From positions 121,766 through 185,765 of the forward strand of contig OZ287715.1 in assembly GCA_965649825.1 (NCBI GenBank): a stretch of 64,000 bases of DNA. The letters run 5' to 3'. This document shows, in pieces, positions 1,653 to 51,900 of the stretch (within the stretch, counting starts at the first letter, position 1; each line of letters starts with the position of its first letter). This stretch comes from Penicillus capitatus (lineage: Eukaryota; Plantae; Chlorophyta). The notes under the pieces were generated by a model that saw only the letters and a list, made by a program, of their open reading frames with translations, was not told the origin of the DNA and did not search any database. The translations under genes and the position numbers were made by a program.

Positions 1653-4600
1653 ATGGATACAAGATACTTTGGTGGTTGCGGCGATCCCTCTAACCCAGGA
1701 TTCCTCGCGACAGGGTTTGACCAGATGAACCCGTTGTCGGTGTTCGACCAAGGGTATCCTCCTCAAAATCACACGAGTCCTGCGTGGTTTGGCTATTCCC
1801 CGAGTCAGGCACCTCAGCGTTTTCCGTTCGTTCCGCCGTCGCCTGTTGGAACGCCATTCGTCGACCTGTCCGGCGAGTCTGTTGGCTGGGGTGGCCAAAT
1901 GATTCCAGACAATAGTGGGTATCGTATTCCATGGTTCGGGAAGACCAAAGGAAAAGGGAACAATACAAGGGGTGGTCGAAGGGGTCGCAACAACAATGGC
2001 AATAATGATCACCATTATCAGCAGCAGCATCAACAACGAAACAGATCACAATGGAATCGAAACAGACGCAGCCATGAAGGTCTGCCTGCTGAGTCTGATG
2101 ACGTCTTGACAGTGGAAGACATCATACGCATGGTTCGCAATTCTCCTGAAAACGCACCCCTTGCGCATGATATCTATCAGAGCATTCGTCATTTTGACAG
2201 TCGTACATGCTCGGTGCTTTTGAAAGATCTCAGCAAATTGGGACTGGGTATGAGGGCCATGGAGATCTTTGACTGGTTAAGGAATTCAGATGAGGCTAAA
2301 GATCTTAAAAGCCTTTGTGATGTCTATACCTACACTGCAATGATTTCTATGTGCATCTATCAACAAGACGTAGACAGAGCATTGCGTCTTGTTGAAGAAA
2401 TGCACGAGAGACGGATCCAAAGAAATGTTCATACCTATACAGCCTTGATGAATGTCTGTATCAAATGCGGAAGGTGTCAGTTGGCGCTGGAGTCCTACAG
2501 GAACATGCGTGAAGACGGCATTGCACCCAATGTGGTGACCTACAACACACTTATTGATATTTATGGAAAGATGGGCCAATGGGAACAGGCTGTCAAGGTC
2601 TTGGTCGACATGAAGAGTGAGGTCAGTCGCAGTGCCTCTGTACATTAGGTATCTGCTCACACGTGTGTTGCTGCTATCAGGGTGTCGAGGCTGTACTGAG
2701 AACATACAACACCTTGATCATTTCGTGCAACATGTGCAATCAGCCAAGAGAGGCTCTGGCTGTGTACAATAGGCTTTTGTCCGAGGGTTTCTGTCCAAAC
2801 GCTACAACGTACAACGCATTGATCTCTGCCTATGGCAAAGCTGGGCAGCTCGACAAGGTCATGGAAGTCTTTCAAGAAATGGTCTGGAAGGGATGCGAGA
2901 GAAGTGTCATCACGTACAGTTCCTTGATTTCTGCCTGTGAGAAAGCGGGTCAGTGGGAGATTGCACTGCAGCTCTTCAATGAAATGCAACACGAAGGATG
3001 CATTCCAAACACTGTGACATACAACTCTCTTATCACAGCCTGCGCCCAAGGTACTTTAACTGAATGCCGACAACGCATCGCGTGAGCACATTTTTGACCT
3101 GATAGGGGCTCAGTGGGAGAAGGCATGTGACGTGTTTGAGCAAATGCGTGTCCAAGGCTGTGCCCCAGACGTCGTCACCTACACGGCGCTTATTAGCGCG
3201 AACGAAAGAGGCGGTCAATGGAGACGCGCTCTCCAGGCATACGAAGAAATGCTCACTCAAGATTGCAAACCGGATGCCATTGTCTACAATGCCATTATCG
3301 ATGCTGTCTGGGAAACTGGTGTCATTTGGGCTCAGCGAAAAGCACTCACAATTTTCGAGTGTGCCAGAAGGCAAGGGCACTTTAAACAGCAACCAATCCG
3401 AAACGTCCATCGAGCAGAAGTCAATCTTCATGCACTGACGGCTGGAGTCGCTGTAATGAGTCTGTACAGCTGGCTGTTAGATTTGAAGTACATACACATA
3501 TGCTCTTACTCATTCACTAACTCTATACTGTGTCCTCTCTTCAGGATACTGGCGTTGAGAGAGGGAGCTCAAGCACTTCCTGTCCAGCTGTGTATCGTGA
3601 CGGATAAGGGACGTACGAGTAAGGAACAAGGAAACTTAGTTGTCAAGGAGGCTGTGGCTGCAATGATGAACTCATGGGGAGCTCCATTCAGGCCCATGCA
3701 CGATTCGATGTATGCAGGCGTCCTGGAAGCATCGGGACGAGACGTAGCTTTGTGGTTGAGTGAAGAACGTTTTGAAGAACGACTTTTTGGGTTTTTCCCC
3801 TGCACGAATCTCCTCCCTTCTAATGCAAATAAGGTAATGATGTGACGTCTTTTACTGTTCTGTCATCTGACGACGGTGTCTGTCCAGTTACCCTTCAAAG
3901 AGGGATTGGCAACGGACATTCCAGTTTTGGCAGATGATCCTTCCTTTGCCAACGAGGCCGCCGTCGAGACGCGGTGCACTGAGGCATTTGCTGCTGTTCA
4001 TCATTTTGAGAGTTCCCATTCTCTGACTCTTCAAGCAATGGGTTTGGCGTACTTACAGCACAGAACCGTCCTCGTGCAGCAGTTGTTTCAATATGGAAAG
4101 AAGCTCAATCTTAGAGAAGAGGTTGCTCACGATGCCGTTCTGCTGATGGACAGAGCCATGTCGACATCCATTCAAATCAAAGAGAACCTCCTGGAACTTC
4201 TGTCTGTCGCATGCCTGGTGCTTGCAATGAAGCAGACTGAGAAGCTTGAGGATCTGCCCAGTGACGAGACTTTGGAACAAGTGACAGACTGCAAGGCATC
4301 CGCAGTTGGCAAAATGGAATGGAATCTGCGTCAGGTTTTAGGAAGCGACACATCAGCCATCTCAACACTGCGCTGCATCATGCTTTATCTGGAAAGACTG
4401 GGATCTCATCTCTTGGATGCACCTTCTGCTTCAGAAGTCTCTGGAGGTGCAGTGGCCTTGGTCGAAAGATCGATGTCCGATCTCACCTTCCTGAACTGCA
4501 GGCCCTCTGTTGTCGCAGCAGCGATACTGTATGCAGAGAGACGTTCTAGAGGCGTGATTCCCTACTGGCCATCGATGTTGGCAAAGCTGACTGGATATCA

Positions 4601-5171
4601 AGACATGAGCTCACCCGAATTGACTGTTGCCATTCGGGGAGCACAGAAATTATGCCAGTGTGGTTCCTCGGACTCTCCAGTCAGTGTGCCAGATGCGACG
4701 ACCCTTCCTAATCTTGCACTGCTGGCTCAGTCAGGAATGGACATGGGAATGTCATCGACATCTCCGGCAGATGCAGCTTCTCTGTTGATGACCAGTGCCT
4801 CGACCAACGACTTCATGCCACCCGTTTGCCATGCCCTCAACCTCGGATTGCTTCATCTGCAGTCCTCAGCATCTCTGTCGGCGGTGGATTCTCTCAATTC
4901 GTTCTCTTCTCTCCAACAGATGCATCAACCCGTAGCAAATGTCGCAGCTGCATCGGCAGAAGATGATCAAGTGACAGCGAATCGTGTCGATGGCGTCGTG
5001 GTTGCACAAGGCGTAGCTGTACCTCCAAGAGTTGTGCAAGGATTAAGTCATGTGACCAGTGGATTCCCAAGCATTCTCCCACATTCGAACAGTTTGCTTG
5101 GATCCAATGCAACCTCCTCACGGATGAATTCCAATGCACTCCGAGTACGTCGTGTCTCTTGTGGCCATTGA
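1653..5171 (+). CDS. PPR-SMR-cyclin fusion protein (multi-exon)
   Basis: Tandem P-type PPR motifs (DVYTYTAMISMC, NVHTYTALMNVC, NVVTYNTLIDIYGK, SVITYSSLISACEK) are followed by an SMR-like VNLHALTAGVA...WL...IVTDKG and then a cyclin box (HRTVLVQQL...HDAVLLMDR...LLSVACLVLAMK). GT-AG introns include 2622-2680 and 3833-3887; the latter joins NANK|LPFKE in frame. The 3' end may extend via one more intron. Confidence 0.85.
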
Positions 5172-18600: not shown

Positions 18601-19801
18601 GCATGGGGCGTGAACCCAGCGCCAACAAGTCTGTTGATTGGTGGTTTCCCTGATCGTGTGGTGAGTGTTTTTGTGTGTCTAGGCACGACATCTTTGCTGG
18701 AGATTCAGGAACAGGAGAGCAAGAGTGCGCAGCAGCAGAGTATCGTTTCCAAGGAAAAGCCCGCTCCGTCACTGGCTATTGGCCCAGTGTCGGGAGGTGG
18801 CTGGAATGTGCAGCCTATGAAGCCGACACCCCTTGTCGATATCATGCAGGAGGACAAGTCTAAGAAACAGGCCGAAGCTGCAGCACAGTCCAAACCACCA
18901 GCAAATCCGACCCAATCAGCAAAGCACGTTTCTTTGTCTGTTCTGACTCATCTCATCTGAGATGGAAAGGTTTCATGGTGTAGACAAGGCACTGCCTGGA
19001 CCAAAAAAGCAGGACGGAACGGGGCTCAAGCAGTGGCAGGAGATGAATCAGGAAAAGGGGACTCTCTGACGTTCAAGGAGGTAGCTCTGCAGTAGTAGGA
19101 AAGAAGAGCCATGACCATCAAAGCTGGATGTCTTTGTCTTTTAGGAGAAAGAGAGTGGTGGTTTCTGGAATTTAGCATCTACTGAAGTCACGACCGATTC
19201 CTGTGACTTGGATTTTTCTCATGACGCTAGCGAGTCCGAAGTTCAGTTGTTTTCTGGTCAGTTGAAAATCTCCCAGCAGTTTCGCGAATGGTGCAAAATG
19301 AATATGGTTGCGTTGGGTGGATCTGGGGACGTTGCCCTTATCGAATTTCTATTGTCCTTGAAAAGCCGTTCTGAAATTGCTGATTACATCCAGGAGTACT
19401 TTAAAGAAGCCCCCCCAGATAAGCTATCTGTTTTCATTTCGGAATTCTTGAAGAGGAAGGACGCAGACTCATCCCAGATTAAGAAGGAACGTGGCAATCA
19501 AAAAACTAGAAAAAAGACATCGAAGTCGAAAGACCCAAGCAAAACCATCAGCAATGCTGTCGAATTGGATACTGTATCATCTGGAACATCAGAATCTCAT
19601 GGCTTGGATGCACCAGGATCGGGGAAAGGAACATCGATGACGACGACAACGACAACGACAACAACAACGCGCGCAAGGGAGAACAAGTCTAAACCAAAAG
19701 TTAAGAAACAGGCAAAAGGTCAACAAATTCCTGCGGACATGTTGGGCTTCAAATCCAATGTTAACTCGGGTACTGTTTACCGAGGAAACCCTAATGGATA
19801 A
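15637..19801 (+). CDS. GYF-domain protein, EXA1/GIGYF-like
   Basis: N-terminal LTPQWMQPK (EXA1 LSPQWL-type), RYSKKELHDI (4E-binding-like), GYF domain WVYKDPNGQVQGPFSKQEVLAWWEEGYFPPNLPV, Q-rich middle, C-terminal WCK..M..L...D..LIEFL...FISEFLKRK. First exon MATDPEQSK|G joins by a GT-AG intron. Confidence 0.88.
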
Positions 19802-20262
19802 GAACTGACTGATTGATTGACTGACTGACCGACTCTCTGATGTTGGCGTTCTCGTGCTGATCTGCTTGTTGACGATGTACGTGTACGTACGTACTGATTC
19901 TTCTTGATATCGTGTGGAATCCTGTTCCTGCATTATTTTTGAGCTAGATTCACTGTCAGCCATTTAACTGATGAACACCGGATCGATTTCTCTCTCTTTG
20001 TTGATTGTACACTGCGTGCTCTCTTTGCTCAAGTCATGCGATGCCATGCGTTTAATAAGACGACCAACTATGCTATCTGTCAATGACAGGCACCTGCATT
20101 CTTCAATATCGACCGACCAAACATTACAGACATGTCAACCGCCACTGAGAGCAATTCAATCCGGTAATGATACTGTTCATATTCATTCACATGCAGAATG
20201 GGACAACCAACCCATACACAGAGCACGAATGAATGCATGCAAGCATGAGCGAGTGCGCAAGA

Positions 20263-21267
<1,005 letters not shown>

Positions 21268-21438
21268 CTATTCAATTAGATCGAGGGTGAAGTTCGCAAA
21301 CGACCTCAGGCTCAATTGGATTGTACAGCCTACACCTCCTCATGTCCGTTGACAACGGTTTGTCGATGGAATACTGACGGCCTTCTAATGATGATTGCTG
21401 TCTACCAGCAGAGTATCTATCTGCATCACCCATCGCCA

Positions 21439-23440
21439 TCATCTGGAGAGTAACGGATTCCAACTCAGTTTCAGGATGCTCTTGAGTTTCGAGATTTTGA
21501 TCAAGAGGGTCGGACTGAAAACAGTGGCAAGATTCAGAAAAGAAACGGCAAAATTCAAACAGCACAGAAGCAGGACAACAATGATCAAAAGATTCGATTG
21601 TTTAGCGAAAGAAGAAGATTTCAAAGCCATCAAACCAAAGAGAGAAACGCAAAATCCAATGACACCCATAGTTATCTGTGCTCTCCAGATAGACTGATTC
21701 TGCTCTACCTGTACAACCTCTATTCTATCCTGCAACTTTTCAAGTGTCGCTGTCAAGTGCTTCATTTGATCGGTCAGGAGGTCTGTGTTGGACTTGGTTG
21801 TTTTCTGCGCTTTCCATAATTCGTCGATGGTTTGCATCAGTCCTCCTCGAAGCTCATCCACATACTGAGACAAGACGTCTGTACTCCCCTTCAATGTCTG
21901 AACATCCTGATGCATTTTCCGGAAAGTGGACAGGGAAGCTGCTGTGTCTCCATTGCGTGCAACCACCTTCTTGACCAGCGACTCTTCGTCCGATTCTCTC
22001 TGTCGATCTTCTGAAGACACGCGTGTGTGACTCTCATCGTTCTGTTCTATTTGCAGCATGGCAACGAGGGAGGGATCTGCTTCTTCAGGAAGCTTGTTCT
22101 CACGATGCGTATCTTTATCTGCAGATGTAGGAAGATGCATCTCTGATCCTACCGGTGCCACAGATTCTGGATCCTTGCTCTCACTTGTCTTCGTCGGACT
22201 GTCCTGTGTACTGCCTTCATCGTGGACAGCCTCTCCGAGCAGCGTTTCGAGATGATTTGCAGGGCTGAGTCCATAGACACTAATGTCATTTATGGTACAG
22301 GCTGTTCCCATTCCGTGATATGCAACGATCCGAATGCCCACATACTTCACACGACCCTTGGATATCACAGTAAAGTGCTGAGTACCTTTCCTGTTTTCTG
22401 GCTTAAGCTCTGTTAGAAACTGCCACTGGGAACCTTCAAAGTTTACTGGATAGCCTGTCAGATTCTTCGAGACACTCGACAGTCGTCCATAGACTTTCAC
22501 TCTGGCCACACGAGGCGAATACAGTTCTTTCATGGTCATCTCGATCATCTTGACTTTTGCTGTGCGAGAGAGTTCCACGATGAACCATTGATCTGCTTTG
22601 CAATCACTCTTCATGAACGTGTCCTTCTTCCCGTCGATAACTCTCAGTGGATGTCTTGCTTCCTGATTGGCACCGACGATTTTTGCGCCGGCATTGGAGG
22701 CGGCCAGATTGATCCACTCTCCAACATCGTCGGATTCAATGGAATCGATGATTTCATTAATTGACGTTGCTTCGATTGACGCATTCTTCAGTTGTTCACG
22801 GAATTTGTCGAGAGATTCGAATCTCTGTTTCCAGTTTTCATGCTCAGAAGATTCCTGTTTTTGCCGGACATCGGCATCTGTAATGATGGAAGCGGTGGGT
22901 GATGCCACGGACATGTCCTCGAGAACTGAATCATCGCAACGGAAACCAAAGGCATGCAGATAGTGGCACCATCGCAAGAGTTCACGTGAATCGTGTGCCA
23001 GACAGATGGGTTCTTCATATGGCATAACGGCTGAAGATTGGGGGTCCGCGTTATCCTTTGTTCGTCGACCCCGAGCATCCTCAAGTGTCTCTAGGTCGTC
23101 GAGTTTGTGCGTAGACACATCATCTCTTCTGGGTTGTTGCGCCGTCAGATGGGAAAATGGATTCCACTCTTGCGCATAACACATCTAAAGAAATGGGACA
23201 ACGCTCGTTGGAATCTCTATGTCATTTTGCAAAAATGTATGAGACCTCCGATGGATCTTCGTCTTCGAGAGGTGTCGCCGTCGAAGAAGGAATACTGTGA
23301 GACCAGCACATCTCGCTCGATGGGAAGGAGTTTGATAGGTTTCCAGTTCTTGACTGTCTGTATTTTTCGCCCCGTTCACGGCATTCACGCGACGGTATGA
23401 AACAGAGAGCGATGACAAAGATAAAAAAGACAGGAAACAT
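21439..23440 (-). CDS. Mid-SUN domain protein (SUN3-5/SLP1-like)
   Basis: N-terminal hydrophobic segment; INLAASNAGAKIVGANQEA...VIDGKKDTFMKSDC..QWFIVELS...ELYSPRV; coiled coil; C-terminal TM helices. Exon 1 joins ORF 21439-23184 in phase 0. Confidence 0.88.
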
Positions 23441-23514
23441 TCGATACTCGGACACGTTCATCGTGTGACGTTTCAGTTTTGGCGAAGAATGAATATCGAC
23501 AGAATCTCCGACAA

Positions 23515-24067
23515 ATGGACGGGAACGGCGTTGAGTCCTCCAAACCGAACGAAGAGCTGCACATGCTTCCCTGTGAAATCGAATTCACGGGATCCGCCAA
23601 CACGGCAACGCACTTCAACGTCACAGAACGCAACGAAGAGAAAAGCAGGTCCACGTTCGACAGGAAACACTTCAAAATGGATGGTTCAGATCCGAAAACA
23701 TATGAGGCGTTCTTTCGAGGTCGACGACTTCTAGGTCAGTTGCCTGCGTCGCAGTAACGATCTCCTATCCAAGGCCGTCTCTGCAGGTCGACGCTTCGCT
23801 TTACCTGCTGGATATGATGGCTACATCGTGTCCAACGACACAACTGCCGCCGAAGAGTCTGAATGGAAGGTGACAGCAACATTTGATGCTGTCACTCAAT
23901 GGAAGCATGACGAACTGCCTCAAAAGGAAGGCCCATTTCCGAGGTCTATGGAGTGGCTACATGTAGCCCAAGCAGTAATTGCTGCATGACGATGTCGATG
24001 ATGATGATGCCATTTGTGGATGTCGCAGTTGATGCAACCGATCGAGCCGAAGGACTGCGAGAAATGA
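23515..24067 (+). CDS. RNASEH2C: Ribonuclease H2 subunit C
   Basis: LHMLPCEIEFTGSA...YEAFFRGRRLLG|RRFALPAGYDGYIV...TFDAVTQWKHD...WLHVAQA|LMQPIEPKDCEK*. The last intron 23975-24028 is inferred; the unspliced stop would be at 23987-23989. Confidence 0.88.
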
Positions 24068-25183
24068 ACGACATGCGACCCTTTCATCGCCTCTTCTGTG
24101 TATTGGCGACGCTATCTGTGACGAGTGTGTCTGCCGAGTGAGAATAGTACTTACCATTCGATCATTCACGGTGCCTTGTCGCGTTTAGCGCGACGTCTGG
24201 TCGTCTACACATTTCGGGACTGACGATAAGACTTACGACGGCAGCAGAGAAGGACAACGTCCTCACCTTTACTGGCAACTATCCCTCATCCGTTCTTACG
24301 GAACAAGACCTCAATACAAACACGGAATTGACAGTGAGATCCCGAGTAGCAGGGGAATATGATTACGCGACAACGCTTTGAACTTCAGGTAAAGTTTGAA
24401 GTGACCAGCAGCAAGACAGCAGAAAAGAATGTTGTTCCTCGGCAATGTTTTTTGATGTTTCAGTTTAAATCCCTCGACGTGGCAGCATACATTCCTGCAA
24501 AGGCTCAAGATGGAAAGCACTCTATCTCCACGAGTGCCAAGTATCTGCTGCAGCAAATTGGACAGCACGAACGGCTGGAACTGAGTTTAATCGTCGGCGA
24601 TCCGCGTTTTGCGGAAGGAGTCGTTTGGAACTTGGGGACGCTGAAGATGGATCCGAATATTCTCAAAGACAGCGGCATTCAGCATCCACCCCTGCCGAGA
24701 AGACTGCACGAACAGAAAACAAAGCCGGAAATCCATCACATCTTTGTAAGAACGCTTGATAGTAGTCATGCATACAAAGCTCACTAAATACCGTCTTGTC
24801 ATTCCCAGCGTGAGCCAGATCCCCGTCCTTCTGTGCTCTTATCTCTCTTCTTTACGGCGCTCAGTATTTTGCCCCTTGTTCATTGGCTGATTTTGACAAG
24901 ATCTTTACAAACGAACTTCGAAGTGAGAAGCTGATCTTCTCTTGTGCATATGTGAGGACTCTCTCGAATGTAGGGACTACCATCAGCTTCGTCGAGGATG
25001 TGGGTGGTGTTCTTTCATGGAGGTCTGGCGCTGATACTCCTTCTCTATGTACTGTTCTTTCTCCGCCTGAACCTTGTCCAACTGTTTCTGCCTTTGGTCT
25101 GCCTATGTGTATTTGTGTTTTTCACTGGGTATCAGACGCTCTGTGCCGTGGCTGGAACAGCGATTAAAGAAAAAATGGAGTAG
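24064..25183 (+). CDS. RPN2: Oligosaccharyltransferase subunit ribophorin II (RPN2/Swp1), short form
   Basis: Signal peptide MRPFHRLFCVLATLSVTSVSA; LSLIVGD...WNLGTL; KPEIHHIF|REP..RP...SLFFT; FHGGLALILLLYVLFF..LNL; basic/acidic C-terminus. Start at 24064 or in-frame 24073. Confidence 0.88.
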
Positions 25184-25237
25184 ACAGAAGTCATTAGGCG
25201 CAACGAAGTGATGTTAGTCGGGAAGCCATGGCAATGG

Positions 25238-26025
25238 ATGGCCCTTCTCCGCGTCGATGTCCGACTGTGGCGACGCGAGATCGATGCTGCTGCACCGTTG
25301 ATATTTAGAGCCGGTTTAAGCTCAACGCGTCCGGGACCATCTCCGCTCCAGCAGCTTCCCACTGTCGTCACTAAAGAAGGGGAAGCGCAAGAACAGTTAT
25401 CGGTGCCTTCAGAGAACAGGTCTGTATGAAGTCTCGAGTGAGAGTTCGACATTCGTTCCTGCGCTGTAGAGTGGCTCGTGCCAACTATCGACAGTTGCCC
25501 ACAAGCGTAAAGAAATTGACACCAGTGGCCAAACTGGTGCGCAAGATGCGTGTGCAAGATGCTTTGCTGCAGTGTGATCTGATCCACAAGAAAGGCGCTG
25601 TGTTCGTACAGAATGCCATACGCTCTGCACGAGCAAACGGAGTCCACAACGATGGCTTGGATCCATCAAAGCTGTTTGTCGAACAGTGCTATGCAACCAA
25701 CGGTCGTTCGCTGAAAAGGATCAAATACCATGCAAGAGGGAGATTTGGCAGAATGAAAAGACGTCGGACGCATCTGACTGTCATACTGAGAGAAGATCCA
25801 TCGCCTCGACCTTCACCACACCGCATTCAAGACACATGGATGCAGAGACAACTCGATCGAGAACGAGGCATTAAAAAGACGGCGACGGAAAAACATCGAG
25901 ATACGAATGGGTATGTCGCAAGGATGAAGTGGACGACGCAGTTGCGGAAATTGAGATTGAAAGAAACGGAAAAACGTCGCAACGCGAAAAGGGAACTCAA
26001 GAATATGCGGTATGCACGAAGATGA
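25238..26025 (+). CDS. MRPL22: Mitochondrial ribosomal protein uL22m
   Basis: ARANYRQLPTSVKKLTPVAKLVRKMRVQDALLQC...KKGA...SARAN...LKRIKYHARGRFGRMKRRRTHLTVILRE; N-terminal presequence-like exon joined by a GT-AG intron. Confidence 0.88.
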
Positions 26026-27443
26026 AGATGATGATGATGATCACACGGAGCAGAACTCTCTGGTGAACCGTGGAAGGATACTGGTCAAATGTTTGTAAAA
26101 AGGTGATAGGATGGACAAAATGAACCGACTTTGCCTCTTTGTCGGTGCAAATATCCAACAACGATTGCAATCTCTCCTTCCATTTTGTCAAAAGCAAAAA
26201 ATACGCAGAAATGCAATGCGAATCTCGGCCGAAGTGGATATGACACTGATGACGGCAAACAACCACAGGATACTCGCTTCAGGAAAAGACATATGGACTC
26301 CATGTATATCGTGTGCAAGACTGTCTTCTGACTTTTGACAGTGCAGATGTCTATTCGTTGCATCCAATTGTCGTCTTGGGTTCTGTCTGTGTCTATCAAT
26401 CCTCTTGAAGGTTCAGTCCATGAGTAAGTCGTGATGCGATGAGACTTCGGCATCACGATCTGTCCTGCGCTAAATGCATTGCGACAGGGAAAAGCTGATC
26501 AAAGCGTGCTCCATTCTATTCCTTTGTTTGCGCGTGAACGGTTTCTACAAGACTGTTCCGACAATTAACAAGACTTGCACCAAGTGAAACATCCATACTG
26601 TTCAATGCCGTACATAACAATGATAACGATTCTTTGATTACAGCGAATCCACATTTGCAACTTAGAAGAGTAAGTGTGACGTGTCCGAAACTAATGCGGC
26701 CGTTATTCTAATGATGCTGAAAGAGCAAATAGCAGACAGCCTACTTGAGAACGTTTTCTCTTACAGATACCTATTCTTTTAAGTGTCCATCTGATCTGAG
26801 TTCATTCCGATGCACCTAGTACTGCTGCGAAGGCGTAGCGCCACTGGTGACGCCACTTTACCGCCCAAGTGTCATCCAAGCCGTCCTAAGTGGACAAGGT
26901 TTGTTTATTAGAGCCCTCAAATACATGCCAAACCGTTGTGGAAATAATGATAGCAGTTGCAGCAATGAAATGAACTACATGACATATAAAAGGGAAGTCA
27001 AACAGTCGTTCCTGTAGCATTTGGTTCGCGACTCTTCACTTCTTCTTTCTTCCGTGTCACAGACTACTAACGCACATGGTTTCGGAGCATGTGAAGAGTG
27101 AGTCCTCAAGAAAAGGCGAGAAGTACAACGAGCCCGTGTCAGGTAGGTGTCATGGAACGGTTGTACTATCGAATTCGAGGTTAACCCGTCAGTGATTACG
27201 CGCAGCTGCCTGACGCCACGTGGAAATTTTTCCGTCTCGAGCGCATATATGTCGCACTCTCGATGGCGCACGGGAAAGATGGTGTACGCATGCAGGATTT
27301 AGTTTCGATCAACACTCCGAAACCATGTGAAGTTAACGGTAAACCTTCCAGATGACTTGTTTCTGACTACCGATGCGCGTCAACGACATTTGAGGCGACG
27401 CGCTACGAACCACAATTACAATGATATCATTTTGTCAGAAGGA

Positions 27444-27850
27444 TTAAAATGTCACATCGGGACTGTCTAGATTTCCAAGGGTTCTGCCTCCGAAGGGGCG
27501 CTCATAAGGGTTCACTGTCACTTGTCCAGCTACATTCTGGGTATAAATCTGTGAATGTGGACATGTAGAGATCTTAGCTCTGTAAGCGTGAAAGCTTTCC
27601 TTTGACACATCTACAGCACCGTTTATAAATATATACCGTCCCAGCATCGGCATGTGAAATATCACGACACCGGCCTCGTAATAGTTGTCCATACTCTCCT
27701 CGTCGAAAGCGAAGAATGTTGCTCAAAAGGCACAACTGTCAATAATAATGCGACCTTAGTAAAAAACGCCGTTAACTTGTAGAAGATATGCCCGAACGAG
27801 TTGACGCAGAAAAGATCAACTGTCAGGTCTGCAATGACCGCTAACGCCAT
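27444..27850 (-). CDS. Hypothetical protein (exon-like fragments)
   Basis: Protein-like reading FFAFDEESMDNYYEAGVVIFHMPMLGRYIFINGAVDV... plus an upstream exon candidate ending at a GT donor; family not recognised. Confidence 0.3.
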
Positions 27851-27905
27851 TCGTACGACGATGATACGACAGGACGCAAGACGATATCCGACTCGAGAAG
27901 CCACT

Positions 27906-30900
27906 CTAATCAAGCGTCTTGTTCATTTGGATATCCATATAGTGTACCACTTGTGTTCCGCGCCCGACGACGGCGACAACGCAGTGGTGATCAGAGAGAC
28001 ATTGCACATCGAGGCCAATGGGTTCAGGAACTTCACAGATAATGCAGCTATCCTCTTCGACTCTGCTTTCATTGATTCTCCAGCGAATGATGCGCTGATC
28101 TAATCCGATGGTGAATGCATGATTCCCATTGGACCACAATCCCCGGACAGCAGAAGAATGAGCGTGGATCTGCTGCAACCACTGCACTCGGTATGGCCGT
28201 TTCCATACATCCAATGCAGAGTTCGCTGAACAGCAGAGCAAAAGAGATGAAACAATCAAGTTCTGATCGTCGCCGCCAGTCAATAGCAATAGTGATAACC
28301 ACTCTTCACCTTCACTAACACATGCGCTACGAAGACAATGACGCATCGCACATTGAAAGCATCAGAAATACCTTTGTGGTGAACAGATCAATGATAGACT
28401 GTTGACGCCGAGCTGATGGCGTTTCTCAAGCGAAACGATTGGTGAGAGTGATCGCGTGCTGTCAGATTGCGCGTCAAAACACGAGCTATCATTTAACAGA
28501 GATGCGATATCCCACAGATGCACGTCTCCATTTGTTGAACCGCCCGCCACAATCAGAGGAAACGAATAATAACCATCTACATGCAACGATGCATGCACGA
28601 TCCTATCTGCTTTGTAGTGTCGAGCATGCACCTGTCTCTTGGGGAGTATCGATGATAACTGGCTTTGGATCCAGCATCGCATGATCCATAGAGATGATTG
28701 GACTTGTAACGTCCACCAGATTCGCTTTCTTGATCCACAATCGACGATCCCAATCAAACAAAGACAACGAAAGATTTGCAGCTGAAGATGCAACGGCAAG
28801 ATGAAGTTCTGGCACAGCCGTATCTGTCTCCCGAACAAACAGTGCCGAACAGAGATATCGCAGATCGCTTGTCGCGGACATCGTCCTATGATATGGTTTT
28901 GGACGCCAACTCTTATAATGTGGGCTTTGAACTGAAATCGCAGTTGCGGTATCGCCGCCTTGCTCGTGTTCTCTGGGGACAGACAATACAGGGTGTTTCA
29001 ATAGTCTTCTCTCATGGAAACAAATGAATACCACACCTCAGCAGCCATGTCATAATAACTTGTTTGGAGCCAACACCGACGACGATCCACCCGTTCAGGA
29101 AATTGCTCCTTGCGAAGGATAAAGACTTGATGGATGATCCGACTGCAGCAACTCCTATCTCGGTGCAACTTAAGAAACAGTCCGTATCGTTATCTGTCAC
29201 AAAGGCCAGACGTATCAATCGCCATGTGAAAGGGAAGTACCTATAGAGGTCGAGCAGTGCAACAGTTTCACTCTTCCGTCTTCTGAGGCAGTACAAAGAC
29301 GAAGTGCGTTGGAGAGTGAGTTCCCATTTGAGGAAGGGAGGAAGAAAACGTCGTTGATTTCGCGTCCATGATACCCAAAATGCAGATAGCGGTGAACAAA
29401 CTCCCTGTTCAAACAGACAGATCCAAACAAATGGCAACGAACCACAAAATCACAGCATTGATCACTTGGAACTGTGAAAAGGAAATGTCCGTTTAACGAT
29501 GTGCAGTACCGATTGTCCGAAAGCGACGTATACGCCGGCACAAAGATTGCCTGTGATGGTCGCAGAGAAATCGTGGAGCTTGTTTCTGCCACCAACGTCG
29601 ACTGCCATGAGTTGTTGGCCGTTGTCCAGATTTGATAGATAGAAGTAGTTGTGGCGGAATCCGCCGACCATCCGCACGTTATCCTTCATCTCTAAATACT
29701 ACATTGCATCATCTCACACCCATATTTTGTATGGAGAAGATGGATCTTTGCCGTGACACCTCTGCACTGCCGATGTCTTTTAAACGGATCTCTCCTGCTT
29801 CCCTGATCTCGGAGTCTTCTATGCAAAATTGCCGAATGCTGTGATTCTTCGAAGCACTGTAGACAGTGAAAGCTTCTGGATGGCAAAAAATCATTCGTAT
29901 TTTCTCCTTTCCGTGAATAGACTTGAACACTCGTGCAAGTCTGCAATCAAAGGTTCGATTCACCTGCATTCGATAAGAAAGAGCTCTAGATTTGTGGGCC
30001 AGGCTACAAACTGAAGTGTCCAATGTCCACTGTAAGATGTTGCCCTTCGTGTCACCGCAGATGAGAAGATGCATGGTCTCGGTCATGTAGTGGGCCACAC
30101 AGACAATACGCGCTGGGAATGGTGAATCGACATTGAAAAGCACCCCTGCATCTACACCAAACAATAATCCATTGCAGTTTCCGTCGTTGAAATAGAAATT
30201 TGGACAAAGACCTGAATACGGAGCCCCTTCCTCCTCGACGACAGATAGACTGTCTTCCTGCTTACTCATCGGGCTGCAATCGTGTATATGATGAATGCTA
30301 CCAGCAAGACGCCTGGTGGAATCGGCAACAGACATCCAGAAGGACAAACCACTCGGACACAGTGTCAATGAAACCATGAGAAGTGGTTGTCCTTCAAACA
30401 CCTCAAAGGACTGATCATTCAATAACATTCCTAGAACACGCCGTTTTTAGTGTGTATTGATGAATCGCCAGAATCTCTTGCCTTCTTCGATCGTCAGCAG
30501 TGTGACAAAACCTCTGCTGTGTGCAATAGCAAGAAGATCTGCAGATTCGTGATGGGGAATGTCCAGACGCATAACATCACATGAAAGGCATGCCCCAAGT
30601 GAGTTAGGACAAGCATAAATCTCGACAAGAGTTTCATTGTTTTGCCTTGCTTCTGCAGAGGCGTATTGCGAAGAAGTGTCTATGACATCTAAATCGCACA
30701 ACAGCACTCTACCTCTGTCTGTGAAGAGGTAAAGAGAATTGGGCCGGCATGCACTGATGTGCAGACATCGGACGAAATCATTCGGCACTGTCAACTGGGT
30801 TAACTGTTGTCTCGATTCCGATAATGCAGTTGAAACAAGCATCCTCTCCATCTCAGATGGTGCGATTTCAGAACGGGATGTATTGTGCTCCCTTTTCATC

Positions 30901-32277
30901 GACAGAGCATCTGGCCACACCTGAATAGAAGCATCAGCGCCTCCAGTAATGAGCATCTGATCAGGCGTCACAGTACAACACCAAATTCCTCGTCCACAAT
31001 GGCCCTGTAAAGTTGAAGAGATTTAGTGGGCGCCTTCTAAAAAGACTCACGTTACTTTCGCAGATGTGATGCAGTCCCCAGTTTCGACTTGCCAAATGCG
31101 GAATGAACAGTCTTCACTGCACGTGATAAGCAACGATTCGCTGTACTGAATATCCCATATTCTAGCCTTGTGTCCAAATCTGCGAAAACGTGGCTCGTTC
31201 ATTGCGATTTCATCTGTTCATGAAAAATAAGAGAAGGATATGAATGCACCCAGATGCTTGACTTCTGCTTGCAGGTATATACCTGTCAAGATGTCAGGGA
31301 AAACATCCCACAGAGCAACAGTCCGATCTTCTGACACTGACGCCAGAGATCTTCCATTTCTTGACCAACGCAATCTATAGGAAGCGCGAAAGCACTCGCT
31401 CGACAAGAAGCAGATGCATCCTACATACCTCAGAATCGCACCAGAATGTCCTGATTTGGTGTACGTCGCCGGAATGATGCACCCGGTTCGATGCATTGGA
31501 TTCACATCAAAGGACCAGATGAGGATCTCGCCGAAGGCTGTCCCACTGGCAACGATAAATCTGTACTCGGTATCAGAGGCCACGTTCTGATGGCTGGGCA
31601 TGTGATTAGTTCCTTCATCAAGCTGAAGTTCTTTCTGTGTATCATCTCTTTCATTCGAGAGACGTATACAATGCATGTCCATTGAGAACAGAAGTGTCTG
31701 TGTCTCGCATTGCATGACACAGGTACTTTGCCACAATTTCCATTCAGACTCATCTGATCTACCAGACATGCCTTCTATTCTCTCGCCGGATCGCTCCCGG
31801 CCTCTTGTCAAGGTTGACACAATGTGTATGGAATTGTCGCTGAAACCAACAAGAGCCATTTCACTTCTTGGAAGCAACACTGCGTCGAGGATCCAATGCG
31901 GAAAAGAGGTGACGGCCGTCAGGCGATCCACGTGAAGCTCTTTCCTTCGGATGTCTGAGAGCTCCAGTTGGATCGACTGCAAAATGCATCTGTTCCTCCG
32001 AGACGTTTGAAAGGGTGCTCACGGTCAAGAATCGGTCTCCGAACACAAGGATCTCTTTACTCTGATCATTGACGTCGTCGCTGAAGGCAAAACCGTGAAT
32101 CCTGGCGCCATCGAAGACATGGTGTGTCAGCAGACAGGTGTCGCACGAAGACAAGAGGTCGTAAACATGAAGTGCCGGACCCATTCCAGCAAGACACAAT
32201 GAGATGGACTCCTCTGTTCCTCCGAGCAGGGAGCATGTGGACAAGGCGGTGACATCGCCGATGTATTGTCGCCGCAT
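27906..32277 (-). CDS. WDR6: WD repeat protein 6 (Trm734/Rtt10 homologue)
   Basis: N-terminal YIGDVTAL...LAGMGPALHVYDL...VFDGARIHGF; ASGTAFGEILIW; GHSGAI.R.RWS.NGRSLASVSEDRTVALW; FHYGYHGRE-type motif (HFGYHGRE); C-terminal HAHSSAVRGLW...FTIGLDQR...VPEP...VAVVGRGTQ. Many short introns. Confidence 0.9.
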
Positions 32278-46400: not shown

Positions 46401-47031
46401 TAGCACCGACGTTTTTTTCTTCTTGAACAAGATCAGAGATCTTGTGCGAGGGAACACTCTTTGCCTGTCTCGTCATTCTGCCAGTTGTTCGAAGTCTTCT
46501 CAGTCGAAAACTACTGACCTCGCAACAGAACTCTGACAATTTGAGATGATGGGTAGAATTGTGGCTAAGGTCAATTTTCTGTTCGGACAACCGGTTTAAC
46601 AGAGGTTTGTCCTAAAGCTGCACGCAATGCTACAGGGAAGAACTGTAGACTACAGCAACGGTTTTCTGGACATCAGGATACCTACTGAAACGGAACTGGA
46701 ATTCATGCTTCTATCATGGCGAATCGGTTCAGTCATTATCATCATCCAGAATTCAGGTGCGGGCAGGTGCGAACATCGACCTCAATGATCTACTGCGAAG
46801 TCTTCACGAATTCTCAGCAGTCTTGAGACGACATTGAGGTGCTCACTGTAACGGATGGATGGATCTGCGATATATCGACCGTTGGCCATGAAATGGCGAT
46901 CGTGTTGGGATTGTTTGCATTAGTTGAGTGCAATGACTCAGATGCCATGTGTCGGAATGCGAACTCGGTCTTCGCCATTGTTTTCCGCCGTCTGAGAGAA
47001 TATCTCTGTCTTCGACATTGTTTTCCGCCGT

Positions 47032-48353
47032 TTGATAGAATATCGGTGTTGTGTCATTCGCACAACAGAGAAAGCTCTCACGTTGCCATTCAAGACTGCC
47101 TCACGCCTGGACCACGGGAGGCCCCCCCCCTGGACCACGGGAGGCCCCCCCCTGGACCACGGGAGGCCCCCCCTGGACCACGGGAGGCCCCCCCTGGACC
47201 ACGGGAGGCCCCCCCTGGACCACGGGAGGCCCCCCCTGGACCACGGGAGGCCCCCCCCCCTGGACCACGGGAGGCCCCCCCCCCTGGACCACGGGAGGCC
47301 CCCCCCCCTGGACCACGGGAGGCCCCCCCCCCTGGACCACGGGAGGCCCCCCCCCCTGGACCACGGGAGGCCCCCCCCCTGGACCACGGGAGGCCCCCCC
47401 CCCTGGACCACGGGAGGCCCCCCCCCCTGGACCACGGGAGGCCCCCCCTGGACCGTCCTTCATCATCAACGGTGTCGACAAATCAAGCACAGTGGGAAGA
47501 AATCAGGGAAAAGCTGATCAAGAACACAGAGATACATGAACTCCCTCCATCCGAAGCACAGAAGACCATACGTGAAATCACGCGCCTCAAGCGAAGAAAC
47601 CCGGACACTGAAGAGCTCGAGGACTCGTTCACGATACGCGTCCACGCCAACGAGACGACAACGGCAGCGTCCCTTTACCAGGGTCTCCGGGTCCGATACC
47701 CTGAAGAACAAGGTCCACCGCGTGATACGAAGAATCATGCAAGAGACAGACGAAATGTCATCCTGGACCGCGTTTGCGAACTTCTGGATCGGGGCGTTGA
47801 ACGCTGAAAACATTCTACCTGTGGAAAGCCAACCGAAGAAGTTGGAAGTCTTGAATGCAGTTCTCAAGATCAGTCGCGAGAGAAAGTCGGCGTGGCGTGT
47901 GAAGAGAATCGGCGAAAGACACGGTCAGTTCTTCATTAACGTCTGCTACTCGGTTGGCAACCCCTCAGACGCAGCACCAGGCGCAGGACCAGGATCAGAC
48001 TCAGGATCACATCTTAGCCGTTGACGCTCGAAGCCGTTTTCGAAGAAGCTTTTAGAGAATGTTTTTTTACACCAAAAAGTACAATCGTTAGGTCGGTGCT
48101 GGGAAAGCCGTCCTTGTCCACTTGTCTCCATAAGACGAGATCGTCGGCATACATCTGGCAGCACATTCTTCCTGTCGATAACCACGAGCGGAAGCTCGAG
48201 GTTTTGAATGCCGTCTGGAAGATCAGTCGCGAAAGCATATCGTTTTGGCATGTGAATCGCACCAAAGACCGCTACGGGATACTCTTCACGAACATTTGCT
48301 ATTTAGTTGGGCGCTCAGGCACAGGCACAGGCCCAGATCTGAGTCCTTGTTGA
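47032..48353 (+). pseudogene. Fragmented orphan ORF(s) carrying the VNTR and a twice-repeated ~50-aa domain
   Basis: ORFs 47536-48024 and 48021-48353 share ILPV...KLEVLNAV.KISRE....W.V.R.....G..F.N.CY.VG. The pieces lie in different frames. Confidence 0.4.
47106..47453 (+). repeat. VNTR of TGGACCACGGGAGG + C(7-10), 15 full units
   Basis: Counted C-run lengths 9,8,7,7,7,7,10,10,10,10,10,9,10,10,7, giving 21-24 nt units. Confidence 0.97.
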
Positions 48354-48520
48354 GGTTCGCGTGAAGCCGTCCGTGAAAGAGAGAAGCTTTAGTATTAATT
48401 TGCTCTACACCACTGAGTACCTGACGAGAATCGGTTGTCGTACCCGGCCGCGAGGTCGTCAAGCGCGCAGCGACACCGTCCTCACTCTAAGAATGCTGTC
48501 CGGGGACACTCCAGCAAGGT

Positions 48521-48915
48521 GTTGCATCGGCCAAGTCGTTTGGAGAACATGCGGAACCTTCCCGTGCACCCCCATGCGGACCCGTTCAGCGGTTCAGCGG
48601 CTCGTCACATCAGATTTCCAGCTCCGGGTCCGGCAACGAGTCGGCCGCCACCGAGCACGTGAACCAGCTCAGAACACTCCTACCAGCATCCCTGTTGCAT
48701 CGGCCAAGTCGTTTGGAGAACATGCGGAACCTTCCCGTGTACCCCCATGCGGACCCGTTCAGCGGTTCAGCGGGTCGTCACATCAGATTTCCACCAACCG
48801 GCCGGGCAACGAGTCGGCCGCCACCGAGCACGTGAACCAGCTCAGAACACTCCTACCAGCATCCCAGTTGCTTCGGCCAAGTCGTTTGGAGAACATGCAG
48901 GACCTCCCGGAGCGT
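48521..48915 (+). repeat. 173-bp tandem repeat (2 full copies + partial) at the satellite's proximal edge
   Basis: GTTGC(A/T)TCGGCCAAGTCGTTTGGAGAACATGC starts at 48521, 48694 and 48867. Confidence 0.92.
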
Positions 48916-51900
48916 TAATGTGCTCGAGCATTCTAGCGCACACCATCCGTCGGTCGCCGGAGGAACAAGGGTCCCCCCTTTGCTTCGCAACCGTAGCAAA
49001 TGTGTCAGCGCCGGAGGGAACAAGGGTCCCCCCTTTGCTTCGCAACCGTAGCAAATGTGTCAGCGCCGGAGGAACAAGGGTCCCCCCTTTGCTTCAATTG
49101 TTGCGACCCTCAACTACGGTTACAATTGTTGCGACCCTCAACTACGGTTATAAATGTTGCGACCTCAACTACGGTTATAAATGTTGCGACCCGCCGGAGG
49201 GAACAAGGGTCCCCCCTTTGCTTCGCATCCTCGCACCACCCGTCGGTCGCCGGAGGGTACAAGGGTCCCCCCTTTGCTTCAATTGTTACGATCCTCAACT
49301 ACGGTTATAAATGTTGCGACCCTCAACTACGGTTATAATTGTTGCGACCCGCCGGAGGGTACTAGGGTCCCCCCTTTGCTTCGCATCCTCGCACCACCCG
49401 TCGGTCGCCGGAGGAACAAGGGTCCCCCCTTTGCTTCAATTGTTACGATCCTCAACTACGGTTATAAATGTTGCGACCCTCAACTACGGTTATAAATGTT
49501 GCGACCCGCCGGAGGGAACAAGGGTCCCCCCTTTGCTTCGCATCCTCGCACCACCCGTCGGTCGCCGGAGGAACAAGGGTCCCCCCTTGCTTCGCAACCG
49601 TAGCAAATGTGTCGTCATCCCAACCGTAGCAAATGTGTCATCCCAACCGTAGCAGATGTGTCGGTCGCCGAGGTAACAAGGGTCCCCCCTTTGCTTCAAT
49701 TGTTACGACCCGACGCAGGGTACAAGGGTCCCCCCTTTGCTTCAATTGTTACGACCCGACGCAGGGTACAAGGGTCCCCCCTTTGCTTCAATTGTTACGA
49801 CCCGCAGCCGCCGGCGACTTGAGGACCTCGATGGATGCAAACCTGCACGTGGATGCACATGGTGAACTTCTAGGAACATCCCAGTTGCTTCGGCCAAGTC
49901 GTTTGGAGAACATGCGGACCCTCCCGGAGCGCAAACGTGCTCGAGCATTCCAGCGCACACCATCCGTCGGTCGCCGGAGGAACAAGGGTCCCCCCTTGCT
50001 TCGCAACCGTAGCAAATGTGTCATCCCAACCGTAGCAAATGTGTCATCCCAACCGTAGCAAATGTGTCATCCCAACCGTAGCAAATGTGTCATCCCAACC
50101 GTAGCAAATGTGTCATCCCAACCGTAGCAGATGTGTCGGTCGCCGAGGTAACAAGGGTCCCCCCTTTGCTTCAATTGTTACGACCCGCAGCCGCCGGCGA
50201 CTTGAGGACCTCGATGGATGCAAACCTGCACGTGGATGCACATGGTGAACTTCTAGGAACATCCCAGTTGCTTCGGCCAAGTCGCTTGGAGAACATGCGG
50301 ACCCTCCCGGAGCGCTAACGTGCTCGAGCATTCTAGCGCACACCATCCGTCGGTCGCCGGAGGAACAAGGGTCCCCCCTTGCTTCGCAACCGTAGCAAAT
50401 GTGTCATCCCAACCGTAGCAAATGTGTCATCCCAACCGTAGCAGATGTGTCGGTCGCCGAGGTAACAAGGGTCCCCCCTTTGCTTCAATTGTCACGACCC
50501 GACGCAGGGTACAAGGGTCCCCCCTTTGCTTCAATTGTTACGACCCGCAGCCGCCGGCAACTTGAGGACCTCGATGGATGCAAACCTGCACGTGGATGCA
50601 CATGGTGAACTTCTAGGAACATCCCAGTTGCTTCGGCCAAGTCGCTTGGAGAACATGCGGACCCTCCCGGAGCGCTAACGTGCTCGAGCATTCTAGCGCA
50701 CACCATCCGTCGGTCGCCGGAGGAACAAGGGTCCCCCCTTTGCTTCGCAACCGTAGCAAATGTGTCAGCGCCGGAGGGAACAAGGGTCCCCCCTTTGCTT
50801 CGCAACCGTAGCAAATGTGTCAGCGCCGGAGGAACAAGGGTCCCCCCTTTGCTTCAATTGTTGCGACCCTCAACTACGGTTACAATTGTTGCGACCCTCA
50901 ACTACGGTTATAAATGTTGCGACCTCAACTACGGTTATAAATGTTGCGACCCGCCGGAGGGAACAAGGGTCCCCCCTTTGCTTCGCATCCTCGCACCACC
51001 CGTCGGTCGCCGGAGGGTACAAGGGTCCCCCCTTTGCTTCAATTGTTACGATCCTCAACTACGGTTATAAATGTTGCGACCCTCAACTACGGTTATAAAT
51101 GTTGCGACCCGCCGGAGGGTACTAGGGTCCCCCCTTTGCTTCGCATCCTCGCACCACCCGTCGGTCGCCGGAGGAACAAGGGTCCCCCCTTTGCTTCAAT
51201 TGTTACGATCCTCAACTACGGTTATAAATGTTGCGACCCTCAACTACGGTTATAAATGTTGCGACCCGCCGGAGGGAACAAGGGTCCCCCCTTTGCTTCG
51301 CATCCTCGCACCACCCGTCGGTCGCCGGAGGGTACAAGGGTCCCCCCTTTGCTTCAATTGTTACGATCCTCAACTACGGTTATAAATGTTGCGACCCTCA
51401 ACTACGGTTATAAATGTTGCGACCCGCCGGAGGGAACAAGGGTCCCCCCTTTGCTTCGCATCCTCGCACCACCCGTCGGTCGCCGGAGGGTACAAGGGTC
51501 CCCCCTTTGCTTCAATTGTTACGATCCTCAACTACGGTTATAAATGTTGCGACCCTCAACTACGGTTATAAATGTTGCGACCCGCCGGAGGGTACTAGGG
51601 TCCCCCCTTTGCTTCGCATCCTCGCACCACCCGTCGGTCGCCGGAGGAACAAGGGTCCCCCCTTTGCTTCAATTGTTACGATCCTCAACTACGGTTATAA
51701 ATGTTGCGACCCTCAACTACGGTTATAAATGTTGCGACCCGCCGGAGGGAACAAGGGTCCCCCCTTTGCTTCGCATCCTCGCACCACCCGTCGGTCGCCG
51801 GAGGAACAAGGGTCCCCCCTTGCTTCGCAACCGTAGCAAATGTGTCGTCATCCCAACCGTAGCAAATGTGTCATCCCAACCGTAGCAGATGTGTCATCCC

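Follow-up and report, generated by a model that had tools for sequence, protein, structure and literature searches.

Three abutting green-algal genes, RNASEH2C, RPN2 and uL22m: a conserved string that may be read from overlapping transcription units

How are neighbouring genes expressed when no space is left between them for one transcription unit to end and the next to begin? The question is raised by three genes in a 64,000-nucleotide (nt) stretch of contig OZ287715.1 (positions 121,766 to 185,765; hereafter the window, whose own coordinates are used throughout). RNASEH2C, encoding ribonuclease (RNase) H2 subunit C (23515-24067), RPN2, encoding a short ribophorin II of the Swp1 type (24064-25183), and the gene of the mitochondrial ribosomal protein uL22m (25211-26025) lie head to tail on the + strand. 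The RPN2 start overlaps the RNase H2C stop in an ATGA (24064-24067, + strand, with the TGA at 24065-24067), and the spacer between RPN2 and uL22m (25184-25210, + strand) measures 27 nt and holds zero ATGs. These spacings of -4 and 27 nt, both conserved, bear out the remark of an initial annotation of this DNA that the open reading frames (ORFs) leave no space between them for a terminator plus a promoter; because of this lack of intergenic room, the transcription units must overlap or be shared. The explanation preferred here, to which we give about an even chance, is that every ORF has a capped mRNA of its own, from which it is translated, and that the transcription units overlap. RPN2 transcripts would then start towards the 3′ end of RNASEH2C, within its final intron or exon, and uL22m transcripts within the last RPN2 exon, and each upstream gene would have its 3′-untranslated region (3′-UTR) and poly(A) site inside the gene that follows.

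The identities of the three abutting genes, as first proposed, were confirmed by matches in Pfam and the Protein Data Bank (PDB). RNase H2C (exons 23515-23644, 23690-23734, 23787-23974 and 24029-24067; ORF of 402 nt, 133 amino acids (aa)) matches PF08615 with an E value of 4e-23 (82.6 bits; cut-off 20.8). RPN2 (exons 24064-24137, 24189-24333, 24389-24745, 24809-24922 and 24974-25183; ORF of 900 nt, 299 aa) matches PF25147 (Ribophorin_II_C; 6e-16, 59.4 bits versus a cut-off of 27) and PF23860 (the third domain; 2e-6, 28.5 bits versus 23.4); like Swp1-type proteins it is without the two N-terminal ribophorin II domains, and its N-terminus is a signal-peptide-like segment. uL22m (exons 25211-25419 and 25470-26025; 254 aa from ATG 25211) matches PF00237 (Ribosomal_L22; 7e-29, 100.5 bits), and its top PDB matches are plant and other mitoribosomal uL22m proteins (Arabidopsis, 2e-23, versus 2e-9 for chloroplast uL22c); by this measure of similarity, the third protein is a mitoribosomal rather than a plastid or bacterial uL22.

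Relatives of the string were found by searching public assemblies with uL22m and RPN2, and their contigs keep introns and thus represent genomic DNA: L002 and L027 (ENA ERZ26696514), L003 (Logan SRR33785045), L009 (SRR28400122), L007 (JGI) and L006 (Logan SRR2835676). Synteny, which had been put forward as a check, was found for all three genes in L002, L027 and L003 and for pairs of them in L009, L007 and L006. In L002 and L027, whose uL22m is 82% identical to that of the window, the junction GAGAAATGAACGACATG is identical; L027, a 4.08-Mb contig of the same sample with a string 99.75% identical to that of L002, probably represents either the second haplotype or a duplication of very recent date. 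In L003 (uL22m ~62% identical to the window) the TGA is replaced by TGC and the RNase H2C frame overlaps RPN2 by 76 nt, and RPN2 is intact despite the lost RNase H2C stop, so that the ATGA overlap is dispensable. The overlap is nevertheless common to three lineages (window, L002 and L009), the L009 contig (RPN2 58% identical to the window) beginning in the last RNase H2C exon, with the ATGA present. In L007, the end of RPN2 is followed by uL22m 32 nt on, while in L006 uL22m follows RNase H2C after 143 nt and there is no RPN2. The RPN2-uL22m spacer thus measures 27 nt in the window, 30 nt in L002, 30 nt in L003 and 32 nt in L007; it is ATG-free in the window, L003 and L007, and the spacer sequences share no common motif outside the close window/L002 pair. 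RPN2 orthologues could be modelled in L002, L003 and L009, and the ratio of non-synonymous to synonymous substitution rates (dN/dS) of the string genes versus L002 is 0.16-0.19.

A rough uL22m tree of low resolution places RPN2-uL22m adjacency on either side of its deepest split, which makes a string of three genes the probable ancestral state, from which RPN2 was probably lost in the L005/L006 lineage. A protein search with RPN2 gave a single match, and in a JGI scan with an RPN2 alignment (relatives 24-37% identical), the distant RPN2 genes of other eukaryotes had neither RNase H2C nor uL22m nearby. Other same-strand or convergent neighbours in these genomes lie ~100-460 nt apart, and the window also holds a 13-kb satellite, so the abutment is a local feature and not one of genome-wide compaction. 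Judged from these genome comparisons, the abutment is real, local and old.

The initial annotation had invoked leaky scanning by analogy with Chlamydomonas and Chromochloris, and this analogy did not hold. Green-algal bicistrons for which leaky scanning was shown experimentally have a short 5′-UTR, a weak ORF1 start context and a median ORF1 length of 291-357 nt, and the ATGs upstream of their ORF2 are found at 0.43-0.49 of expectation (PMC11291117). The RNase H2C ORF1 of 402 nt is short, as in those bicistrons. Its ATGs, however, are about twofold over expectation in the window and L002 (observed/expected 2.1 and 2.3; 0.97 in L003 and 1.2 in L006), and 11 ATGs lie between the RNase H2C and RPN2 starts in the window, one of which (23817) is in an A-3/G+4 context. 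For ORF2 (RPN2) the ratio is 0.7-1.35, and its 900 nt hold 10-19 internal ATGs, of which the window has two in an optimal context. The ORF1 start itself reads C-3/G+4 in the window and L002, C-3/A+4 in L003 and A-3 in L006; this context would be at most a partial fit to leaky scanning. Since the upstream ATGs are not depleted and a 900-nt ORF2 with 10-19 internal ATGs intervenes, leaky scanning is contradicted at this locus as far as its sequence can tell, and it is not credible that uL22m would be reached by scanning past the upstream ATGs.

Separate mRNAs are favoured because of this ATG content, the overlap in L003, the purines at -3 of the downstream starts, the tight packing of genes nearby and the stoichiometry of the encoded proteins. 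All downstream starts (RPN2 and uL22m) carry a purine at -3, which would be expected if they were the first AUGs of their own mRNAs. A subunit of the oligosaccharyltransferase (OST) is expected in larger amounts than a subunit of RNase H2, and translation downstream of a 133-codon ORF would not yield such an excess of the OST subunit over the RNase H2 subunit.

Tight packing is seen upstream of the string. The Sad1_UNC gene (581-aa ORF, - strand, ATG 23184) is separated from RNase H2C by a divergent spacer of 330 nt, and its stop from the ATG of Rab11 (20258-21182, - strand) by 258 nt in the window and ~98 nt in L003; Rab11 in turn forms a convergent pair with a GYF-domain gene, 456 nt apart. 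The inter-ORF distances of -4 and 27 nt are far below these 258 and 456 nt. Two spliced RNA contigs of relatives cover Rab11 (L010, SRR28002496, and L011, a JGI metatranscriptome); they stop 49-74 nt upstream of the Rab11 ATG without entering Sad1_UNC, and they join Rab11 to its convergent neighbour, so that the 3′ ends of the two overlap. It follows that independent start sites can sit very near an upstream gene in these genomes and that neighbouring transcripts overlap.

Conservation of neutral sites (non-coding plus third codon positions), which differ between the window and L002 by 21%, was also followed along the locus. Junction 1 (23997-24146, + strand), a block that runs from the end of RNase H2C intron 3 through that gene's last exon and RPN2 exon 1 into the beginning of RPN2 intron 1, has only 2 of 75 neutral sites mismatched (P=3.6e-6). 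This is the strongest such conservation of the locus, above that of the stretch upstream of the RNase H2C ATG (23450-23514, + strand; 3 of 65 sites mismatched, P=2e-4), which is probably the RNase H2C 5′-UTR or core promoter within the 330-nt divergent spacer. With 2/75 mismatches against a 21% background, junction 1 carries, by this comparison, some non-coding function; it could act as RPN2 5′-UTR or promoter, as RNase H2C 3′-UTR or as a coupling element. Its conservation resembles that of the promoter-proximal RNase H2C stretch and of known UTRs, and we count this resemblance as pointing to separate mRNAs. Conservation is unusually high in RPN2 intron 3 as well (24746-24808; 4 of 63 sites mismatched versus L002, P~0.001).

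A single nuclear mRNA, tricistronic or bicistronic for RPN2-uL22m, is a possibility that we take seriously while thinking it less likely than separate mRNAs. Its promoter would lie upstream of RNase H2C and its poly(A) site after uL22m, and RPN2 and uL22m would be reached by termination-reinitiation or another non-canonical route, not by simple leaky scanning. The green-algal host speaks for such an mRNA, as do the hundreds of exclusively polycistronic chlorophyte loci with short inter-ORF distances, which are enriched for mitochondrial, nuclear and secretory-pathway proteins and include an OST subunit (PMC7896298, PMC11291117). The small ORF1 (402 nt) with C at -3, the -4 and 27-32 nt spacings kept in diverged genomes, the spacer free of ATGs in the window, L003 and L007, and the RNase H2C gene that still adjoins uL22m in L006 without RPN2 would fit it as well, yet the triplet is not in the published bicistron supplement searched and ATGs are enriched, not depleted, upstream of ORF2. 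Termination-reinitiation, which the initial annotation had raised, receives a similarly divided answer: the ATGA overlap and the short ATG-free spacer fit it, but upstream ORFs of 133 and 299 codons are expected to allow only inefficient reinitiation (PMC11291117), the 76-nt overlap of L003 is incompatible with reinitiation at the overlap, and the junctions are without structure (130-nt segments fold no better than shuffles, z from -0.04 to 0.41), nor was an 18S rRNA-complementary motif seen in the 100 nt upstream of the junctions. Termination-reinitiation is thus weakened by the long upstream ORFs, the L003 overlap and the missing junction structure, and the particular proposal of a siphonous-ulvophyte tricistron, in which two long downstream ORFs, for an ER protein with a signal peptide and for a mitoribosomal protein, would be translated by termination-reinitiation at the ATGA and at a ~30-nt spacer of conserved length, appears doubtful to us.

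Poly(A) signals speak on both sides. In ulvophytes the signal is UGUAA (PMC1868727). A candidate TGTAA lies 69 nt past the uL22m stop (26094-26098, + strand) and 94 nt past it in L002, and within the string the + strand has just one TGTAA, at 24745 (5510 in L002), which is the donor of RPN2 intron 3; this is a pattern that fits a single terminal signal, and hence one mRNA, in the window, L002, L003 and L006. It does not fit L007, where two TGTAA stand at the very end of RPN2, a pair that we count for separate mRNAs. The motif count is without power, at 0.6-0.7 motifs expected per kb (~1.3 per 2 kb) and with control genes that are also without the motif. A precursor split into single messages, by spliced-leader (SL) trans-splicing or by alternative cis-splicing from a shared 5′ exon, is very unlikely. 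Each spacer does contain an AG (for example tcattAG/gc at 25196-25203, common to L002), and tunicate operons have similarly short intercistronic distances; such dinucleotides are expected by chance, however, and an acceptor before the RPN2 ATG would fall inside the RNase H2C coding sequence, without a pyrimidine tract. Moreover, spliced-leader trans-splicing is to our knowledge not known in green algae, and Rfam and tRNA scans of the 64-kb window returned no family, SL RNA included, although the gene for a leader could be located outside the window; no trans-splice acceptor could be recognized. As the window is a metagenome contig, one might suspect a chimeric assembly or erroneous gene models, but the same order and junctions recur in assemblies that are independent of it in sample and source (ENA, Logan and JGI), and the spliced ORFs are intact, with conserved intron positions and dN/dS of 0.16-0.19; an artefact, to which we assign a negligible chance, is refuted for practical purposes.

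Several observations weigh against separate, overlapping transcription units. RNA-derived sequence of the three genes was found neither among the relatives' contigs nor, as cDNA, in the JGI scan with the RPN2 alignment, so that the internal start and poly(A) sites are predicted ones. Chlorophytes commonly have polycistronic nuclear mRNAs; these include stop/start overlaps, and their inter-ORF distance in Auxenochlorella has a median of 40 nt (PMC11291117). The -4 and 27-32 nt spacings are clear outliers, of a kind that marks polycistrons in Chlamydomonas, and even very diverged genomes retain a spacer of 27-32 nt. The C at -3 of the ORF1 start in three lineages is weak, as in leaky-scanning loci. 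In the window, L002 and L003, neither RNase H2C nor RPN2 is followed by a TGTAA, bar the intron donor >670 nt past the RNase H2C stop. Neutral sites at junction 2 are at background versus L002, and synonymous sites among distant relatives, a comparison of low power, showed no conservation peak near the junctions.

The host is most likely a Bryopsidales-like ulvophyte green alga, to judge from Rab11, which is 92% identical to that of Caulerpa lentillifera and ~76-80% identical to Rab11/YPTC6 of other chlorophytes and mosses; an earlier guess at a green alga was therefore sound. The window is eukaryotic, with introns of 45-63 nt and ~47% G+C outside its satellite block; given published G+C values of 52.4% (Ostreobium) and 40.4% (Caulerpa), it stems from neither of these two genomes.

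Among known systems, one close likeness is to the green-algal polycistrons of Chlamydomonas, Chromochloris and Auxenochlorella (PMC7896298, PMC11291117). Like the string, these are chlorophyte loci with unrelated small housekeeping ORFs on one strand, a small first ORF and inter-ORF distances from tens of nt to stop/start overlap (published medians 40-260 nt; PMC7896298, PMC11291117); they encode mitochondrial, nuclear and endoplasmic reticulum-pathway proteins, and their collinearity is kept over deep divergence. The string differs from them in its enriched ATGs and its middle ORF of 900 nt. A search of one published bicistron supplement gave no such pair with an RNase H2C, ribophorin or L22 entry, and a literature search found no nuclear polycistron in Ulvophyceae or Bryopsidales. 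Stop/start overlaps like the ATGA of junction 1 occur in the calicivirus subgenomic RNA, in influenza B segment 7 and in some fungal and metazoan dicistronic genes; unlike those cases of reinitiation, the string has no rRNA-complementary motif or stable structure, and the overlap is lost in L003. In microsporidia, nucleomorphs and Mamiellales, start or poly(A) sites lie inside neighbouring genes, and here too neighbouring transcripts overlap (L010 and L011), but in contrast to those compact genomes the present one is only moderately compact: its other spacers measure ~100-460 nt, and the window includes a 13-kb satellite. In the spliced-leader operons of nematodes and tunicates, housekeeping genes of one orientation, frequently mitochondrial ones, likewise follow each other with very little DNA between them; the string differs from these operons in that no spliced leader was found, the lineage is another and the ORFs overlap at junction 1.

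Abutting ORFs and nuclear polycistrons are thus already known in green algae, and the string is a further, well-conserved case. If it were one mRNA, nuclear polycistrons would extend to Ulvophyceae, and the locus would offer a natural case beyond leaky scanning, with long ATG-rich upstream ORFs, in which reinitiation after long ORFs could be tested directly. Reinitiation, if true, would define a second and mechanistically distinct type of green-algal polycistron, one that has persisted across a deep divergence in the order. Separate mRNAs would instead imply conserved promoters and poly(A) sites inside neighbouring coding exons of a genome without extreme compaction elsewhere. In both cases, annotators of bryopsidalean genomes are warned that abutting ORFs and GC-AG introns are real.

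Such a GC-AG intron is found in RNase H2C, whose introns (+ strand) are 23645-23689 (GC-AG), 23735-23786 and 23975-24028 (54 nt). The third had been recognized before and was confirmed on the sequence, together with the ATGA; the first was missed, and the bounds of the second are corrected here. In the window it is 45 nt long and the frame is open whether it is spliced or not. The homologous segment is 50 nt in L002 and L027, where the gene is intact solely after its removal; a GT-AG intron was considered for restoring the L002 frame and rejected, as none is in the right length class and only GC-AG works. In L003 and L006 this position is occupied, in the same phase, by GT-AG introns, and dN/dS versus L002 (0.19 overall for RNase H2C, 0.125 downstream of the segment) indicates purifying selection. 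With the intron removed, the RNase H2C protein is of 133 and not 148 aa. The intron is silent in the window and is exposed only by the comparison with L002 and L027; gene predictors restricted to GT-AG would mis-call such genes. A further GC-AG intron occurs in L006 (296-339).

The other boundaries of the string were largely as first described. The RPN2 stop at 25183 and a second in-frame RPN2 ATG at 24073, 5 nt past the RNase H2C stop and a possible alternative start, were both confirmed. For uL22m, a start at ATG 25238 after a gap of 54 bp had been given; this ATG is in frame, being the tenth codon when the start is 25211, but the earlier ATG 25211 had been overlooked and the spacer is accordingly 27 nt. 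Two out-of-frame ATGs described in that gap (25228 and 25234) do exist; they lie inside uL22m as read from 25211. ATG 25211 is most likely the uL22m start, because it is kept in L002 and the resulting 27 nt match the 30-32 nt of L003 and L007.

Further ATGs and joined frames were also considered. An ATG at 23489 with A at -3, 26 nt upstream of the RNase H2C start and out of frame with it, opens a 66-codon ORF that is kept in L002 and, if transcribed, forms an overlapping upstream ORF. In RNase H2C intron 3, six ATGs (within 23986-24063) stand in the RPN2 frame, which is open from there to the RPN2 start; both indels versus L002 in this intron are of 3 nt, and the run is probably an ATG microsatellite that would not be coding. 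An N-terminally extended RPN2 beginning in this run was rejected, since L003 is without it. A read-through fusion of RPN2 with uL22m, in frame in the window and L002, was rejected as well: L003 has a second in-frame stop, and in L007 the two are out of frame.

Outside the string, the window and L002 are colinear over 19238-31754 save for 26010-27802, downstream of uL22m, which is unalignable with the matching 2.1 kb of L002. Positions 19850-20199, located between the stop codons of the convergent GYF-domain and Rab11 genes, are 98-100% identical to L002 against a neutral divergence of 21%; as L010 and L011 join these two genes, their overlapping 3′-UTRs are strongly constrained. Nearer the beginning of the window, within 3132-5171, the end of a PPR-SMR ORF (3845) is followed by the opening of a cyclin ORF (3876). 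The two ORFs would be joined if 54 nt were spliced out in frame with a GT at 3834 and an AG at 3887; failing that, the cyclin ORF has its first Met at ~4035, just ahead of the cyclin box, which gives a spacing of ~190 nt. The pair may be a second conjoined or abutting one in the window. The satellite, a 13-kb block at 47000-60250 with 56-62% G+C and a steady negative GC skew, is nested, with units of 23, 28, 46, ~157, ~260 and ~406 nt; it starts with a 24-nt unit repeated 15 times (47106-47448), and its ORFs are generated by the repeats only.

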